Assembly (NCBI GenBank): GCA_977020255.1
Contig: CDROCS010003739.1
Location: 62,001-126,000, forward strand
From: Obrimoposthia wandeli
Taxonomy: Eukaryota
DNA length: 64,000 nucleotides
Direction: 5' to 3'
Shown: one piece after another, positions 12,166-17,132 of the stretch
How the letters are laid out: every line of letters begins with the position of its first letter
How positions within the stretch are numbered: position 1 is the first letter of the stretch
Translations under genes and position numbers: made by a program
Notes under the pieces: model-generated
The model's input: only the letters and a program-made list of their open reading frames with translations
Database searches by the model: none
Told to the model about the DNA's origin: nothing

Positions 12166-12182
12166 CGCGGGATGGAGCAGTT

Positions 12183-12216
<34 letters not shown>

Positions 12217-12242
12217 TGGTTCAAATCCAGCTCCCGCAACCA
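12166..12242 (+). tRNA. tRNA-fMet (CAT), copy 1
   Basis: 77 nt, C1xA72 mismatch, GGG/CCC anticodon stem, encoded CCA. Confidence 0.97.
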
Positions 12243-12265
12243 ACTTACTTGATATGTTCAAGTAT

Positions 12266-12341
12266 GCGACACTAGCTCAGCTGGTAGAGCGCAACCTTGC
12301 CAAGGTTGAGGTCACGAGTTCGAGCCTCGTGTGTCGCTCCA
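12266..12341 (+). tRNA. tRNA-Gly (GCC), copy 1
   Basis: 76-nt cloverleaf, CAACC-TTGCCAA-GGTTG, U73, CCA. Confidence 0.97.
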
Positions 12342-12424
12342 CTCTTTCTTATGAAAGAGCGTTTCATTGCTCAGGCGATGAAGCAAAAGTTGTTATCGTA
12401 CTTAACGGTGAGATATAAATCGGA

Positions 12425-12441
12425 CGCGGGATGGAGCAGTT

Positions 12442-12475
<34 letters not shown>

Positions 12476-12501
12476 TGGTTCAAATCCAGCTCCCGCAACC
12501 A
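12425..12501 (+). tRNA. tRNA-fMet (CAT), copy 2
   Basis: Identical to copy 1. Confidence 0.97.
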
Positions 12502-12532
12502 ATTTACTTGTTGAGAGACAAGGACCAGAGAT

Positions 12533-12608
12533 GCGACACTAGCTCAGCTGGTAGAGCGCAACCTTGCCAAGGTTGAGGTCACGAGTTCGAGCCTCGTGTG
12601 TCGCTCCA
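12533..12608 (+). tRNA. tRNA-Gly (GCC), copy 2
   Basis: Identical to copy 1. Confidence 0.97.
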
Positions 12609-12678
12609 AATTGATGTCATAGCGATAAGCTGTGAGATGATAGTTGTTACCGTACTTTAACGGTGAATATAAATCGGA

Positions 12679-12695
12679 CGCGGGATGGAGCAGTT

Positions 12696-12729
<34 letters not shown>

Positions 12730-12755
12730 TGGTTCAAATCCAGCTCTCGCAACCA
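12679..12755 (+). tRNA. tRNA-fMet (CAT), copy 3, G5.U68 variant
   Basis: Single C>T at 12747 turns an acceptor-stem G-C pair into G.U; otherwise intact. Confidence 0.93.
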
Positions 12756-12786
12756 ATTTACTTGTTGAGAGACAAGGACCAGAGAT

Positions 12787-12860
12787 GCGACACTAGCTCA
12801 GCTGGTAGAGCGCAACCTTTGCTGTTGAGGTCACGAGTTCGAGCCTCGTGTGTCGCTCCA
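12787..12860 (+). pseudogene. Degenerate tRNA-Gly, copy 3 (anticodon arm 2 nt short, GCC lost)
   Basis: CAACCTTGCCAAGGTTG is replaced by CAACCTTTGCTGTTG; 74 nt. Confidence 0.8.
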
Positions 12861-12930
12861 AATTGATGTCATAGCGATAAGCTGTGAGATGATAGTTGTT
12901 ACCGTACTTTAACGGTGAATATAAATCGGA

Positions 12931-12947
12931 CGCGGGATGGAGCAGTT

Positions 12948-12981
<34 letters not shown>

Positions 12982-13007
12982 TGGTTCAAATCCAGCTCCC
13001 GCAACCA
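12931..13007 (+). tRNA. tRNA-fMet (CAT), copy 4
   Basis: Identical to copy 1. Confidence 0.97.
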
Positions 13008-13038
13008 ATTTACTTGTTGAGAGACAAGAACCAGAAAT

Positions 13039-13114
13039 GCGACACTAGCTTAGCTGGTAAAGCTCAAGCTTTGCAAAGTTCAGGTTGCGCGCTCGAGCCT
13101 CGTGTGTCGCTCCA
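13039..13114 (+). pseudogene. Degenerate tRNA-Gly, copy 4 (12 substitutions, nominal anticodon TGC)
   Basis: Substitutions at tRNA positions 13, 22, 26, 30, 34, 35, 39, 43, 48, 49, 52, 54; acceptor stem and CCA intact. Confidence 0.8.
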
Positions 13115-13183
13115 AATTGATGTCATAGCGATAGCTGTGAGATGATAGTTGTTACCGTACTTTAACGGTGAATATAAATCGGA

Positions 13184-13200
13184 CGCGGGATGGAGCAGTT

Positions 13201-13234
<34 letters not shown>

Positions 13235-13260
13235 TGGTTCAAATCCAGCTCCCGCAACCA
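13184..13260 (+). tRNA. tRNA-fMet (CAT), copy 5
   Basis: Identical to copy 1. Confidence 0.97.
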
Positions 13261-13291
13261 ATTTACTTGTTGAGAGACAAGGACCAGAGAT

Positions 13292-13367
13292 GCGACACTA
13301 GCTCAGCTGGTAGAGCGCAACCTTGCCAAGGTTGAGGTCACGAGTTCGAGCCTCGTGTGTCGCTCCA
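13292..13367 (+). tRNA. tRNA-Gly (GCC), copy 5
   Basis: Intact, identical to copy 1. Confidence 0.97.
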
Positions 13368-13436
13368 AATTGATGTCATAGCGATAGCTGTGAGATGATA
13401 GTTGTTACCGTACTTTAACGGTGAATATAAATCGGA

Positions 13437-13453
13437 CGCGGGATGGAGCAGTT

Positions 13454-13487
<34 letters not shown>

Positions 13488-13513
13488 TGGTTCAAATCCA
13501 GCTCCCGCAACCA
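13437..13513 (+). tRNA. tRNA-fMet (CAT), copy 6
   Basis: Identical to copy 1. Confidence 0.97.
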
Positions 13514-13544
13514 ATTTACTTGTTGAGAGGCAAGAACCAGAGAT

Positions 13545-13619
13545 GCGACACTAGCTCAGCTGGTAGAGCGCAACCTTACCAGGTTGAGGTCACGAGTTCG
13601 AGCCTCGTGTGTCGCTCCA
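13545..13619 (+). pseudogene. Variant tRNA-Gly, copy 6 (6-nt anticodon loop TTACCA)
   Basis: CAACC-TTACCA-GGTTG: G34>A plus loss of one A; 75 nt. Confidence 0.75.
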
Positions 13620-13689
13620 AATTGATGTCATAGCGATAAGCTGTGAGATGATAGTTGTTACCGTACTTTAACGGTGAATATAAATCGGA

Positions 13690-13706
13690 CGCGGGATGGA
13701 GCAGTT

Positions 13707-13740
<34 letters not shown>

Positions 13741-13766
13741 TGGTTCAAATCCAGCTCCCGCAACCA
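13690..13766 (+). tRNA. tRNA-fMet (CAT), copy 7
   Basis: Identical to copy 1. Confidence 0.97.
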
Positions 13767-13797
13767 ATTTACTTGTTGAGAGGCAAGGACCAGAGAT

Positions 13798-13873
13798 GCG
13801 ACACTAGCTCAGCTGGTAGAGCGCAACCTTGCCAAGGTTGAGGTCACGAGTTCGAGCCTCGTGTGTCGCTCCA
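13798..13873 (+). tRNA. tRNA-Gly (GCC), copy 7
   Basis: Intact. Confidence 0.97.
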
Positions 13874-13943
13874 AATTGATGTCATAGCGATAAGCTGTGA
13901 GATGATAGTTGTTACCGTACTTTAACGGTGAATATAAATCGGA

Positions 13944-13960
13944 CGCGGGATGGAGCAGTT

Positions 13961-13994
<34 letters not shown>

Positions 13995-14020
13995 TGGTTC
14001 AAATCCAGCTCCCGCAACCA
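13944..14020 (+). tRNA. tRNA-fMet (CAT), copy 8
   Basis: Identical to copy 1. Confidence 0.97.
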
Positions 14021-14051
14021 ATTTACTTGTTGAGAGGCAAGAACCAGAAAT

Positions 14052-14127
14052 GCGACACTAGCTCAGCTGGTAGAGCGCAACCTTGCCAAGGTTGAGGTCA
14101 CGAGTTCGAGCCTCGTGTGTCGCTCCA
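14052..14127 (+). tRNA. tRNA-Gly (GCC), copy 8
   Basis: Intact. Confidence 0.97.
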
Positions 14128-14197
14128 AATTGATGTCATAGCGATAAGCTGTGAGATGATAGTTGTTACCGTACTTTAACGGTGAATATAAATCGGA

Positions 14198-14214
14198 CGC
14201 GGGATGGAGCAGTT

Positions 14215-14248
<34 letters not shown>

Positions 14249-14274
14249 TGGTTCAAATCCAGCTCCCGCAACCA
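14198..14274 (+). tRNA. tRNA-fMet (CAT), copy 9
   Basis: Identical to copy 1. Confidence 0.97.
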
Positions 14275-14305
14275 ATTTACTTGTTGAGAGACAAGGACCA
14301 GAGAT

Positions 14306-14381
14306 GCGACACTAGCTCAGCTGGTAGAGCGCAACCTTGCCAAGGTTGAGGTCACGAGTTCGAGCCTCGTGTGTCGCTCCA
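14306..14381 (+). tRNA. tRNA-Gly (GCC), copy 9
   Basis: Intact. Confidence 0.97.
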
Positions 14382-14451
14382 AATTGATGTCATAGCGATA
14401 AGCTGTGAGATGATAGTTGTTACCGTACTTTAACGGTGAATATAAATCGGA

Positions 14452-14468
14452 CGCGGGATGGAGCAGTT

Positions 14469-14502
<34 letters not shown>

Positions 14503-14528
14503 TGGTTCAAATCCAGCTCCCGCAACCA
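14452..14528 (+). tRNA. tRNA-fMet (CAT), copy 10
   Basis: Identical to copy 1. Confidence 0.97.
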
Positions 14529-14559
14529 ATTTACTTGTTGAGAGACAAGGACCAGAGAT

Positions 14560-14635
14560 GCGACACTAGCTCAGCTGGTAGAGCGCAACCTTGCCAAGGT
14601 TGAGGTCACGAGTTCGAGCCTCGTGTGTCGCTCCA
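14560..14635 (+). tRNA. tRNA-Gly (GCC), copy 10
   Basis: Intact. Confidence 0.97.
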
Positions 14636-14693
14636 AATTGATAGGTTATTGCTCTTGCAGTGATGACCGGAAGGTGAAAAACTTCCATGTGAT

Positions 14694-14769
14694 GCGACAC
14701 TAGCTCAGCTGGTAGAGCGCAACCTTGCCAAGGTTGAGGTCACGAGTTCGAGCCTCGTGTGTCGCTCCA
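14694..14769 (+). tRNA. tRNA-Gly (GCC), copy 11 (Gly-Gly doublet breaking the alternation)
   Basis: Intact; flanked by unique spacers. Confidence 0.97.
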
Positions 14770-14831
14770 AATTCTTCTTCTTCGGAAGAGATAAGTTTTC
14801 ATCGTACTTTGAACGGTGAGTATAAATCGGA

Positions 14832-14848
14832 CGCGGGATGGAGCAGTT

Positions 14849-14882
<34 letters not shown>

Positions 14883-14908
14883 TGGTTCAAATCCAGCTCC
14901 CGCAACCA
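14832..14908 (+). tRNA. tRNA-fMet (CAT), copy 11
   Basis: Identical to copy 1. Confidence 0.97.
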
Positions 14909-14939
14909 ATTTACTTGTTGAGAGACAAGGACCAGAAAT

Positions 14940-15029
14940 GCGACACTAGCTCAGCTGGTAGAGCGCAACCTTGCCAAGGTTGAGGTCACGCCAGTTCCTT
15001 GAAGATCAGGAGCCTCGTGTGTCGCTCCA
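14940..15029 (+). pseudogene. tRNA-Gly, copy 12, with +14 nt in the T arm
   Basis: ACG-AGTTCG-AGCC is replaced by ACG-CCAGTTCCTTGAAGATCAGG-AGCC; 90 nt; GCC anticodon intact. Confidence 0.8.
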
Positions 15030-15099
15030 AATTGATGTCATAGCGATAAGTTGTGAGATGATAGTTGTTACCGTACTTTAACGGTGAATATAAATCGGA

Positions 15100-15116
15100 C
15101 GCGGGATGGAGCAGTT

Positions 15117-15150
<34 letters not shown>

Positions 15151-15176
15151 TGGTTCAAATCCAGCTCCCGCAACCA
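15100..15176 (+). tRNA. tRNA-fMet (CAT), copy 12
   Basis: Identical to copy 1. Confidence 0.97.
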
Positions 15177-15383
15177 ATTTACTTGTTGAGAGACAAGACA
15201 TGCAATACTCATATAATGAGTTAAGCATACCTACTACTGGGAAGTAGTAGCACAATGTAGCATTCCTGGATTTATCGATTACCGACAATCTAGTGTGTTG
15301 CCTCAAAGCGCTTTTAAACATTGGTTTAAAAGACCATAGGAAGCAATCAGCTTCAATACATCATCTTAGTTTCTATATCAGCA

Positions 15384-15408
15384 CAGCCTCTATGAGGTTG
15401 GTTTTTTT
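15384..15408 (+). terminator. Terminator of the tRNA operon
   Basis: cagcctc-tat-gaggttg followed by gttttttt. Confidence 0.7.
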
Positions 15409-15611
15409 ATCTGATAAAAAGCAAATAAGATGCGCTGTAGTCACCAATCCTGTGAAGCATTGGTATCAAAATACGGTATAAGCCTTTCATAGCATCGCTA
15501 TACTAAAGAGTTTGTAATACGTATCGGCTCTCATTTATCCAGATCATAAAGCAGTATGGAAACCTATGTTTTCAGGCTTTATACCCTTATTGTTAAGTGA
15601 AAAGTAGCGCT

Positions 15612-15955
15612 TAATTCACAGAGTTATCCACAAAAAATAATCTGTGGGTAAGTCAGTTGATTACATGTGCTGATGCAGTGTGAATAACTCTATATCCCCC
15701 CTTGATTCCCCTTTTTTTTTAATTATCCACAAACTGATTATTAACAGGCTAACATACTGTTTTATATGGTCTAGTTGCCAGTTTTATTACACTTATATAC
15801 AGCTTGATCAGTATGCTTATTTATGGGGTTAATAGACTGAATTTTTTATCCACCACCTGTGTTTAATATTTAAGAAGCAGGTAGGAAAGAGAAGTGTTGA
15901 AAATGTTTTCCACATTCACTAAGAATGTAGGCTACCTCTCATTTTGTGTGTATAA
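15612..15955. promoter_or_regulatory. datA: DnaA-box cluster, datA-like locus
   Basis: Perfect TTWTNCACA at 15624(+), 15679(-), 15723(+), 15906(+), 15947(-); one-mismatch boxes at 15612, 15643(-), 15793, 15846. Lies between the tRNA-Gly(GCC) cluster and the queG 3' end, as E. coli datA does. Confidence 0.75.
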
Positions 15956-15998
15956 CTTCAGTGTATTACAGTATGCGGGCTTGTGATTTTGAGTATTG

Positions 15999-17132
15999 CT
16001 AAGCGTCTCGTGGAAGACCTTTCTCGACAATGCGAACTAACCTTTTCGTGTTTGATGGTAGTACATCAATCGCATTCTTGGCGTATTTGTTATGTTGCTT
16101 TTTGATTGCCCACTGAATATGTATATCGAGTATCTTATTAAGGGCTAATCGACTGTTTAACGCTTCAAGAATGTCTTCGTTATAAGGTGCGTTACCCATT
16201 GCTATCGCGATGTTTCGTAGCCATTGGATATGACCGATACGACGAATAGCTGAGCCTTCAGTATTCTTTAGGAATGTTGCTTCATTCCATAAAAATAGTG
16301 TTGTTAAGTCTTGTTGATACAAGTTGTCTCGGCAGTGATAATCCGTTTCTTGCGTGATTTCACCGTTGCGGCTAAATGGGCAGACTAACTGACAATCATC
16401 ACAACCGTATATACGGTTTCCTATCTTCTCTCTTAATTCCTCTGGTATTACACCATCAAATTCAATCGTTAAATAAGAAATACAGCGTCGTGCATCGACA
16501 ATACCTTCTTCAATAATGGCGCCGGTTGGGCAGCTTGTTATGCAGGCAACACATTTACCACATTGGTTCTCTTGAGGTGTATCGACGGGAAGTGGCAGAT
16601 CAATTAGCAATTCGCCAAGAAAGAACCAAGAGCCACTATCACTGTTTAGAATCAATGAATGTTTCCCCGTCCAGCCTAGTCCTGCTTTTTCAGCTAATGG
16701 GCGCTCTAGAATGGGGGCAGAGTCTACAAACGGGCGATACCCAAATTGACCTACTTCCTTTTCGATTCGTTGACCAAGCTGTTTAAGGCGATTACGAATG
16801 AGCTTGTGATAATCGCGCCCTAAAGAGTAACGACTAATATAAGCTTTAAGCGGTTGTTTAAGTGTTTGAGCAAATCCAGCCTCAGGAGGCAGGTAATTCA
16901 TTCTTACACTGATCACGCGAACGGTATTTGGCAGTAATTCAGCTGGGCGGGCACGCATCATACCGTGGCGTGCCATCCAATCCATCTCACCGTGGTATCC
17001 TGCATCTAGCCAGCGTTGTAGCTGGGCTTCATGTTTTTGCAGATCAACATCGCAGATCCCGACTTCTTGGAATCCTAGCTCTTTTCCCCATAGCTTTATT
17101 TGCTGAGTGAGTGCGGTGTAATCAATGCTCAT
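15999..17132 (-). CDS. queG: Epoxyqueuosine reductase
   Basis: YSLGRDYHK, FVDSAPILER, CGKCVACITSCPTGA and YGCDDCQLVCP 4Fe-4S motifs. Confidence 0.95.
   Translation of the reverse strand: MSIDYTALTQQIKLWGKELGFQEVGICDVDLQKHEAQLQRWLDAGYHGEMDWMARHGMMRARPAELLPNTVRVISVRMNYLPPEAGFAQTLKQPLKAYISRYSLGRDYHKLIRNRLKQLGQRIEKEVGQFGYRPFVDSAPILERPLAEKAGLGWTGKHSLILNSDSGSWFFLGELLIDLPLPVDTPQENQCGKCVACITSCPTGAIIEEGIVDARRCISYLTIEFDGVIPEELREKIGNRIYGCDDCQLVCPFSRNGEITQETDYHCRDNLYQQDLTTLFLWNEATFLKNTEGSAIRRIGHIQWLRNIAIAMGNAPYNEDILEALNSRLALNKILDIHIQWAIKKQHNKYAKNAIDVLPSNTKRLVRIVEKGLPRDA

Follow-up and report, generated by a model that had tools for sequence, protein, structure and literature searches.

A dense cluster of DnaA boxes occupies the non-coding DNA between a tRNA array and queG in this contig, and it very probably represents a conserved regulatory locus, predicted to bind DnaA, at the position that datA holds in Escherichia coli. 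On balance, we take this locus to be the Vibrionaceae counterpart of datA, that is, an early-replicated, non-coding site at which DnaA would assemble and which would thereby lower the re-initiation potential of the chromosome I origin. The sequence-only reading had proposed that the locus corresponds to E. coli datA while arranging its boxes differently, and this proposal is well supported by the gene order, the conservation footprints, the orientation of the boxes and of the IHF-type motif, and the origin-proximal location in relatives. From the same comparisons, we consider it reasonably probable that the locus restrains initiation in the role of a negative regulator. The further step, a restraint that works through IHF-dependent ATP hydrolysis, is suggested more tentatively, by analogy with E. 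coli.

Detailed knowledge of how DnaA is controlled away from the origin comes almost exclusively from E. coli, and work on Vibrio has centred on chromosome II, with RctB and crtS. In the literature searched, the original DDAH paper and other subscription papers aside, we found no earlier description of a Vibrionaceae datA; the openly readable reviews mention DARS-like sequences in V. cholerae and no datA. A datA counterpart that is footprinted across the whole family provides a concrete target of 330 bp for the restraint of chromosome I initiation in two-chromosome bacteria. Its altered geometry, with equally lengthened arms and an added inverted box, also serves as a natural experiment that can show which datA features are important.

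Gene order and the non-coding spacer

The window (the whole stretch of 64 kb that was analysed) lies on a contig whose QueG is 98-99% identical to that of the P. frigidiphilum/P. indicum/P. profundum group in a homologue search, and the contig is therefore assigned to Photobacterium. The assembly containing it (1.35 Gb in 6,912 contigs) carries at least 18 full-length dnaA genes, each on a different contig and some of these contigs megabase-sized, and it must therefore combine the DNA of many organisms. The window's own contig yielded no dnaA.

The genes in the contig follow the order orn, tRNA array, box cluster, queG (convergent), nnr, tsaE and amiB. The tRNA array, as called by ARAGORN, comprises 23 genes on the plus strand (12166-15176), mainly Met-CAT and Gly-GCC, and is transcribed towards the DnaA boxes. 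The convergent queG gene, encoding epoxyqueuosine reductase (TIGR00276, 486 bits), is on the minus strand at 15999-17132, and the cluster sits just beyond its 3' end. E. coli K-12 has the order orn, glyVXY, datA, queG (convergent), nnr and tsaE. Every neighbour of E. coli datA has the same position and orientation as at the Photobacterium cluster, with glyVXY as the counterpart of the tRNA array. The array itself is irregular in places, having a tRNA-Gln(TTG) at 12787, an unassignable tRNA at 13545, a 90-nt tRNA-Gly at 14940-15029, and a Met gene after 13007 that is without a Gly partner.

Within the family, 70 of the 80 Vibrionaceae loci have a convergent tRNA-Gly or tRNA-Met gene on the far side of the element, and the contigs of the remaining 10 end too early. 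An order-wide sample of 91 genomes, of which the best 30 QueG loci were examined, places this arrangement in a broader frame. Ten of these best 30 loci have a box cluster past queG, either of the Vibrionaceae type or of the Enterobacteriaceae type, and a convergent tRNA-Gly operon was present within 900 nt in eight of the ten. In the remaining 20 there is no tRNA at that place and at most a single near-consensus box. Within this sample, the module made of tRNA genes, box cluster and queG is thus common to the Vibrionaceae-type and Enterobacteriaceae-type loci, and it was not seen in the other 20 of the 30.

The boxes had been described as lying in some 345 bp of non-coding DNA, and this description is borne out. 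The spacer at 15177-15998, bounded by the end of the last tRNA (15176) and by the queG stop codon (which ends at 15999), is non-coding, and an Rfam search with permissive thresholds gave no match in 15150-16100. One open reading frame of 50 aa with a GTG start (15680-15832) was considered and rejected as a gene, on account of indels and a conservation of ~0 bits there.

Past the tRNA array, a terminator-like hairpin (15384-15400) and a T-run were identified on the plus strand by a terminator scan (15384-15410 together), and both are kept in the three closest relatives. The sequence-only reading had this terminator shield the locus from the strong tRNA operon. The hairpin and the T-run are there as stated, but the shielding is only a supposition, and just 40 of 70 relatives have a hairpin with a T-run between the tRNA array and the element by the crude rule that was applied. 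E. coli datA loses its IHF, in a manner that depends on the cell cycle, when read-through from glyVXY enters it, and this read-through is part of its regulation (PMC10950094); because of this precedent, the terminator at 15384-15410 may as likely be a regulator as a shield.

This setting brings up one alternative to the datA reading. The locus could be a DnaA-bound site with no effect on the nucleotide state of DnaA, either a passive titration sink or a roadblock or regulator that deals with the collision between tRNA read-through and queG. In its favour, the element sits where two transcription units converge, a terminator-like hairpin precedes it in this clade, and E. coli datA was itself first described as a titration site (PMC3937223). 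Against this, the alignments of the element contain no conserved promoter hexamers or ORF, and several features of the layout described below are not needed for a sink or a roadblock. We regard this alternative as unlikely.

DnaA boxes, GATC sites and the IHF-type motif

Five exact matches to TTWTNCACA are present in 15612-15955, at 15624(+), 15679(-), 15723(+), 15906(+) and 15947(-), which confirms the five perfect boxes counted from the sequence at the outset; the whole 64 kb has nine. The accompanying count of four boxes with one mismatch was too low, the actual number in the same interval being seven (15612, 15643, 15738, 15793, 15846, 15858 and 15895), with an additional one at 15535. With the strict consensus TTATCCACA, there are two perfect boxes (15624 and 15723) and six with one mismatch between 15535 and 15955, so that 8 of the window's 19 matches at up to one mismatch fall in this short segment.

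Such a cluster could in principle be a chance gathering of AT-rich near-matches, given that the spacer has 34.7% G+C versus 43.1% for the window, and that matches to the relaxed consensus with one mismatch are common throughout (126 in the 64-kb window). Random placement of the same number of matches, however, produced such a cluster in 0 of 20,000 trials. A more demanding null model, first-order Markov simulations of 15409-15998 with the dinucleotide make-up of the spacer (n = 5,000), gave an expectation of 0.12 relaxed boxes against the 5 seen and of 0.24 strict boxes with up to one mismatch against the 8 seen, and none of the 5,000 simulations reached the observed counts. The boxes are, moreover, conserved across five genera, and a chance origin of the cluster is scarcely credible.

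Conservation across the Vibrionaceae had been named beforehand as a check on the locus. For this purpose, 80 loci from Photobacterium, Vibrio, Salinivibrio, Grimontia and Enterovibrio were retrieved via QueG and joined with the window to make 81 sequences. A pair of boxes, A and B, is present in 78 of the 81, a figure which, like the other counts over these 78 sequences, is made of related and therefore non-independent cases and overstates the independent support. Of the three exceptions, two are contigs that stop within 600 nt. The third is P. damselae, where the boxes lie ~800 nt further out; they are found ~870-970 nt past queG, compared with the usual 85-370 nt, an indication that DNA has been inserted between queG and the element. 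The information content reaches ~2 bits per position in the conserved blocks and drops to ~0 in the spacers, the 10 bases that separate A from B among them, and two independent MAFFT alignments agree with this picture of fixed blocks and drifting spacers. Even with related sequences, fixed blocks beside freely varying spacers in five genera are the signature of constraint on the blocks.

Box A, a perfect TTATCCACA on the plus strand at 15624-15632, is exact in all 78 elements. It is oriented like box 2 of E. coli datA with respect to the tRNA genes and queG, and we read it as the counterpart of that box. Two further boxes precede it in the same direction. The nearer one is a weak box, TAATTCACA, on the plus strand at 15612-15620, only 3 bp before box A; its end forms an ACAG about two bases before box A that is near-invariant in the family (76/78). 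The other is a one-mismatch box, TTATCCAGA, on the plus strand at 15535-15543, 89 bp upstream of box A and overlapping the GATC at 15542-15545. The block at 15535 is conserved in many Photobacterium, a match with up to one mismatch being found in just 6 of the 78 Vibrionaceae elements, and it is possible that this box is the counterpart of E. coli box 7.

Box B (TTACCCACA, minus strand, 15643-15651) stands head-to-head with box A across a variable spacer of 10 bp, and is found as TGTGGRTAA at +18 or +19 from box A in all 78 elements. A third site follows 3 bp past box B on the minus strand at 15655-15663, where the plus strand reads AGTTGATTA; it is conserved as NGTTGATNA or GGTGGGTAA across the Vibrionaceae elements. 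At the distal end is box E (TTTTCCACA, plus strand, 15906-15914), with the same direction as box A. Its offset from box A is +262 to +282; 75 of the 78 elements have it exactly and the other three read TTGTCCACA, and it would be the counterpart of box 3 of E. coli datA. Box D, a weak inverted box TTAAACACA on the minus strand at 15858-15866 (plus strand TGTGNNTAA), is placed 48 bp before box E in the window, and all 78 elements have TGTGNNTAA at 47-48 bp upstream of their box E. Weak boxes thus accompany the two strong ones in either arm.

The remaining boxes have narrower distributions. The box TTATTCACA on the minus strand at 15679-15687 is limited to Photobacterium, where it accounts for 18 of the 78 elements at +55, while the second perfect TTATCCACA (plus strand, 15723-15731) is a gain of the P. 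profundum group, seen in the window and in the loci L002-L004 only. A one-mismatch box, TTATCCACC, on the plus strand at 15846-15854 is also found in the P. profundum group only, and the box TTATACACA on the minus strand at 15947-15955 in close relatives only (the window, L002 and L004). One block that is conserved in the genus according to the alignment, at 15793-15809 on the plus strand, combines a one-mismatch box, TTATATACA, with a GATC at 15806-15809.

The GATC sites of the element are positionally conserved, unlike in E. coli datA. Between boxes A and E, 185 of them were seen in the 78 loci versus 63.5 expected, which is an enrichment of ~3-fold. Vibrio has them at ~+76, +183 and +205 from box A, Photobacterium at +181 to +182 (15806 here), and most family members have one at +181 to +183. 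The window contains one GATC only between boxes A and E. The fixed offsets hint at an involvement of Dam/SeqA.

The sequence-only reading had also pointed to an IHF-like sequence on the minus strand at 15662-15649, between boxes. The letters of this 14-mer are present as given, but they fit the IHF consensus only with a shifted spacing, the segment 15649-15662 overlaps both box B and the third site, and a canonical IHF motif with up to one mismatch is found at this position in only 1-2 of the 78 relatives. The role assigned to it does not hold up, and the sequence is more likely to be the putative third DnaA site. An IHF-type motif, YAANNNNTTGATW, occurs elsewhere in the element: with up to one mismatch, 51 of the 78 have it in the interval +116 to +129 from box A (mostly +120 to +126), and 16 of 78 have it perfectly, compared with 0-7 of 78 for other 16-nt windows within the element. 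Matches in the opposite orientation come largely from Photobacterium. In the MAFFT alignment, the invariant columns TAA and TG are positions specified by the IHF consensus, and IHF alpha is encoded in both V. cholerae and P. profundum. At this family-conserved site the window has TAACATACTGTTT (plus strand, 15750-15762), with two mismatches to YAANNNNTTGATW, and the case for IHF therefore comes from the relatives.

In many Photobacterium (for example the loci L005, L007 and L011), there is an 8-bp inverted repeat, made of TATCAACA, 8 bp and TGTTGATA, at ~+117 to +138 from box A (15738-15765 in the window), and the IHF-type motif forms its right half. This repeat can also be read as two weak head-to-head DnaA boxes, and it is degraded in the window genome.

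Comparison with E. coli datA and with DARS

DDAH in E. coli is described as requiring boxes 7, 2 and 3, all in one direction, with the IHF site located between boxes 2 and 3 (PMC5742627). Box 2, the IBS and box 3 of E. coli datA have the same orientation as box A, the IHF-type motif and box E of the Vibrionaceae element, the IBS being at +65 and box 3 at +162 from box 2. Measured from centre to centre, the distances in E. coli are 67 bp from box 2 to the IBS and 95 bp from the IBS to box 3, and those in the Vibrionaceae are 124-127 and 151-154 bp. Both arms are ~57 bp longer in the Vibrionaceae, and the difference of 27-28 bp between the arms is kept. As a numerical observation, such an equal lengthening of the two arms fits a complex folded at the IHF bend. 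The two strong boxes of the same direction are consequently 262-282 bp apart in the Vibrionaceae versus 159-165 bp in the Enterobacteriaceae-type loci.

Other features differ from E. coli datA more fundamentally. Neither E. coli datA nor the Enterobacteriaceae-type loci have an inverted partner box following box 2, whereas the Vibrionaceae have the invariant inverted box B and the third site; with box B following box A at 9-10 bp in 78 of 78, the boxes of the element do not all point in one direction, as the essential ones of datA do. Another difference is box D, the weak inverted box held 48 bp ahead of the distal box E, and box 4, which adjoins box 3 in E. coli, has no such equivalent in the Vibrionaceae element. 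E. coli box 7 is a low-affinity box 66 bp from box 2 and in the same direction. No family-wide counterpart of it was seen in the 78 Vibrionaceae elements, and of the two candidates in the window, at 15612 (with a 3-bp gap) and at 15535 (genus-limited), neither is at the 66 bp of E. coli. The window departs from E. coli datA further still, its IHF motif being degraded and three extra boxes having been gained. Considering the longer arms, the inverted partner and the third site, the DnaA contacts must therefore differ in detail from those of E. coli datA, and the Vibrionaceae locus, judged by its layout, is no plain copy of datA.

The invariant inverted box B, the lack of a family-wide box 7 and the nearly doubled distances to the IHF motif are evidence against the datA reading, as are the two mismatches in the IHF motif of the window genome. 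So is the module of box A, box B and the third site, which looks like the core of a DARS, an element of the opposite activity. The cores of E. coli DARS1 and DARS2 consist of box I, 5 bp, inverted box II, 3 bp and box III, the 5-bp gap being confirmed in the literature (PMC6868365), while the Vibrionaceae element has box A, 9-10 bp, inverted box B, 3 bp and the third site. As box III does in a DARS, the third site comes 3 bp past its neighbour and in the same direction (15643-15651, then 15655-15663), so that box B and the third site together match the box II-III module of the DARS-type cores present elsewhere in Vibrionaceae genomes. The DARS-type cores of the Vibrionaceae have the form TGTGGATAA-N3-TGTTGATGG, and the third site NGTTGATNA resembles box III, TGTTGATGG, of the cores in the same genomes. 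DARS2 likewise uses IHF at a distance (PMC5742627).

These likenesses would allow a DARS-like or a two-way activity, in which the A/B pair and the third site release the nucleotide from DnaA-ADP and reactivate it, or in which the locus switches between inactivation and reactivation. The gap between boxes A and B speaks against it: it is 10 bp in the window and 9-10 bp in 78 of 78 elements, never 5 bp, and by the defining spacing the locus is therefore not a DARS. The four Vibrionaceae genomes searched each have one to three true cores with a 5-bp gap at other places, and the pair next to queG is the only longer-gap case among 13 distinct sites in these four genomes. The DARS-like sequences of V. 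cholerae have been reported at the uvrB and mutH positions (PMC6090056), and the genomic position of the queG-adjacent element is that of datA, different from that of a DARS. Taken with these points, a DARS-like or two-way role looks quite improbable. Some of the DARS-type cores were noticed on the second-largest replicon of two genomes (G002 and G003), which is probably chromosome 2.

The layout also bears on the possibility of a passive sink or a roadblock raised above. What would suit such a site is the strong, invariant, high-affinity box A in an extended context that is common to other strong sites. Neither a sink nor a roadblock, on the other hand, has a need of distances fixed over 280 bp, of an oriented IHF-type motif, or of a weak box 48 bp before box E. 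The context of the strong box had been considered separately as a proof of shared descent, with AACAGAG as a flank common to box A and E. coli box 2, and was rejected as such. The 16-mer made of AACAGAG and the box is found in 24 of the 91 genomes, and 5 of its 28 occurrences are beside queG; since it occurs away from queG in many genomes, the flank is only the context of a strong box.

Clusters of DnaA boxes outside the origin are also present in B. subtilis and S. coelicolor, where they are thought to restrain untimely initiation (as cited in PMC10950094). Their positions and layouts are unrelated to those of the Vibrionaceae element, and no homology is implied by the comparison; an involvement of IHF is not described for them in the literature covered.

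Proposed activity, Hda and chromosomal position

As a datA counterpart, the locus could work in the following way. IHF would bend the DNA at ~15756 and draw the two arms together, and DnaA-ATP would oligomerise over the boxes and become sequestered there. The ATP of the sequestered DnaA would then probably be hydrolysed, as in DDAH of E. coli. Read-through from the tRNA array, together with Dam/SeqA acting at the conserved GATC sites, may time the formation of the complex.

The importance of such a site depends in part on which other routes of DnaA inactivation are available. Hda is the factor of RIDA, the main route of DnaA inactivation in E. coli. The NCBIfam model for Hda found nothing above its cut-off in five Vibrionaceae genomes, while it scored 275-288 bits in two control genomes of the Enterobacteriaceae type, and the E. 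coli Hda protein used as a query matched only DnaA in three Vibrionaceae genomes. Over the 41 Vibrionaceae genomes sampled, Hda was found in one and not found in 40. If this absence is true, the main route of DnaA inactivation in E. coli is missing in the Vibrionaceae, and a datA-like site would therefore matter more there than it does in E. coli. In the sole Hda-positive genome, too, DnaA boxes cluster between tRNA-Gly genes and queG, and the A/B pair there is degenerate; no clean link emerged between the presence of Hda and the layout of the element.

One could go further and imagine a hybrid locus, which joins the position and the IHF arm of datA with a DARS-like core that has a 10-bp gap, and which serves as the principal switch of the DnaA nucleotide state for chromosome I in a family apparently without Hda. 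It would be timed by early replication, Dam/SeqA and tRNA read-through and, via chromosome I, would set the firing of chromosome II. We offer this as a speculation with a low chance of being correct.

E. coli datA is located at ~10% of the chromosome from oriC and is thus duplicated early after initiation, and the corresponding locus has a comparable place in two complete relatives. On chromosome 1 of Vibrio sinus (3.28 Mb), two perfect boxes within 300 bp are found at only three places. One of them, a box pair 13 kb from dnaA, is the likely origin, judged by its position near dnaA only, and the queG locus, another of the three, is ~256 kb (7.8%) from this pair. On chromosome I of Enterovibrio, the queG locus is ~244 kb (6.9%) from dnaA. 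A cluster of DnaA boxes might also be a relic or a second replication origin, an idea as hard to credit as that of a chance cluster. The single GATC between boxes A and E in the window and the flanks of tRNA genes and queG, rather than gidA/mioC, are not those of an oriC, where GATC sites are dense, and in V. sinus the likely origin pair lies at the distance just given. The third of the three places in V. sinus chromosome 1, at 599921-600048, has two perfect, oppositely oriented DnaA boxes 119 bp apart.
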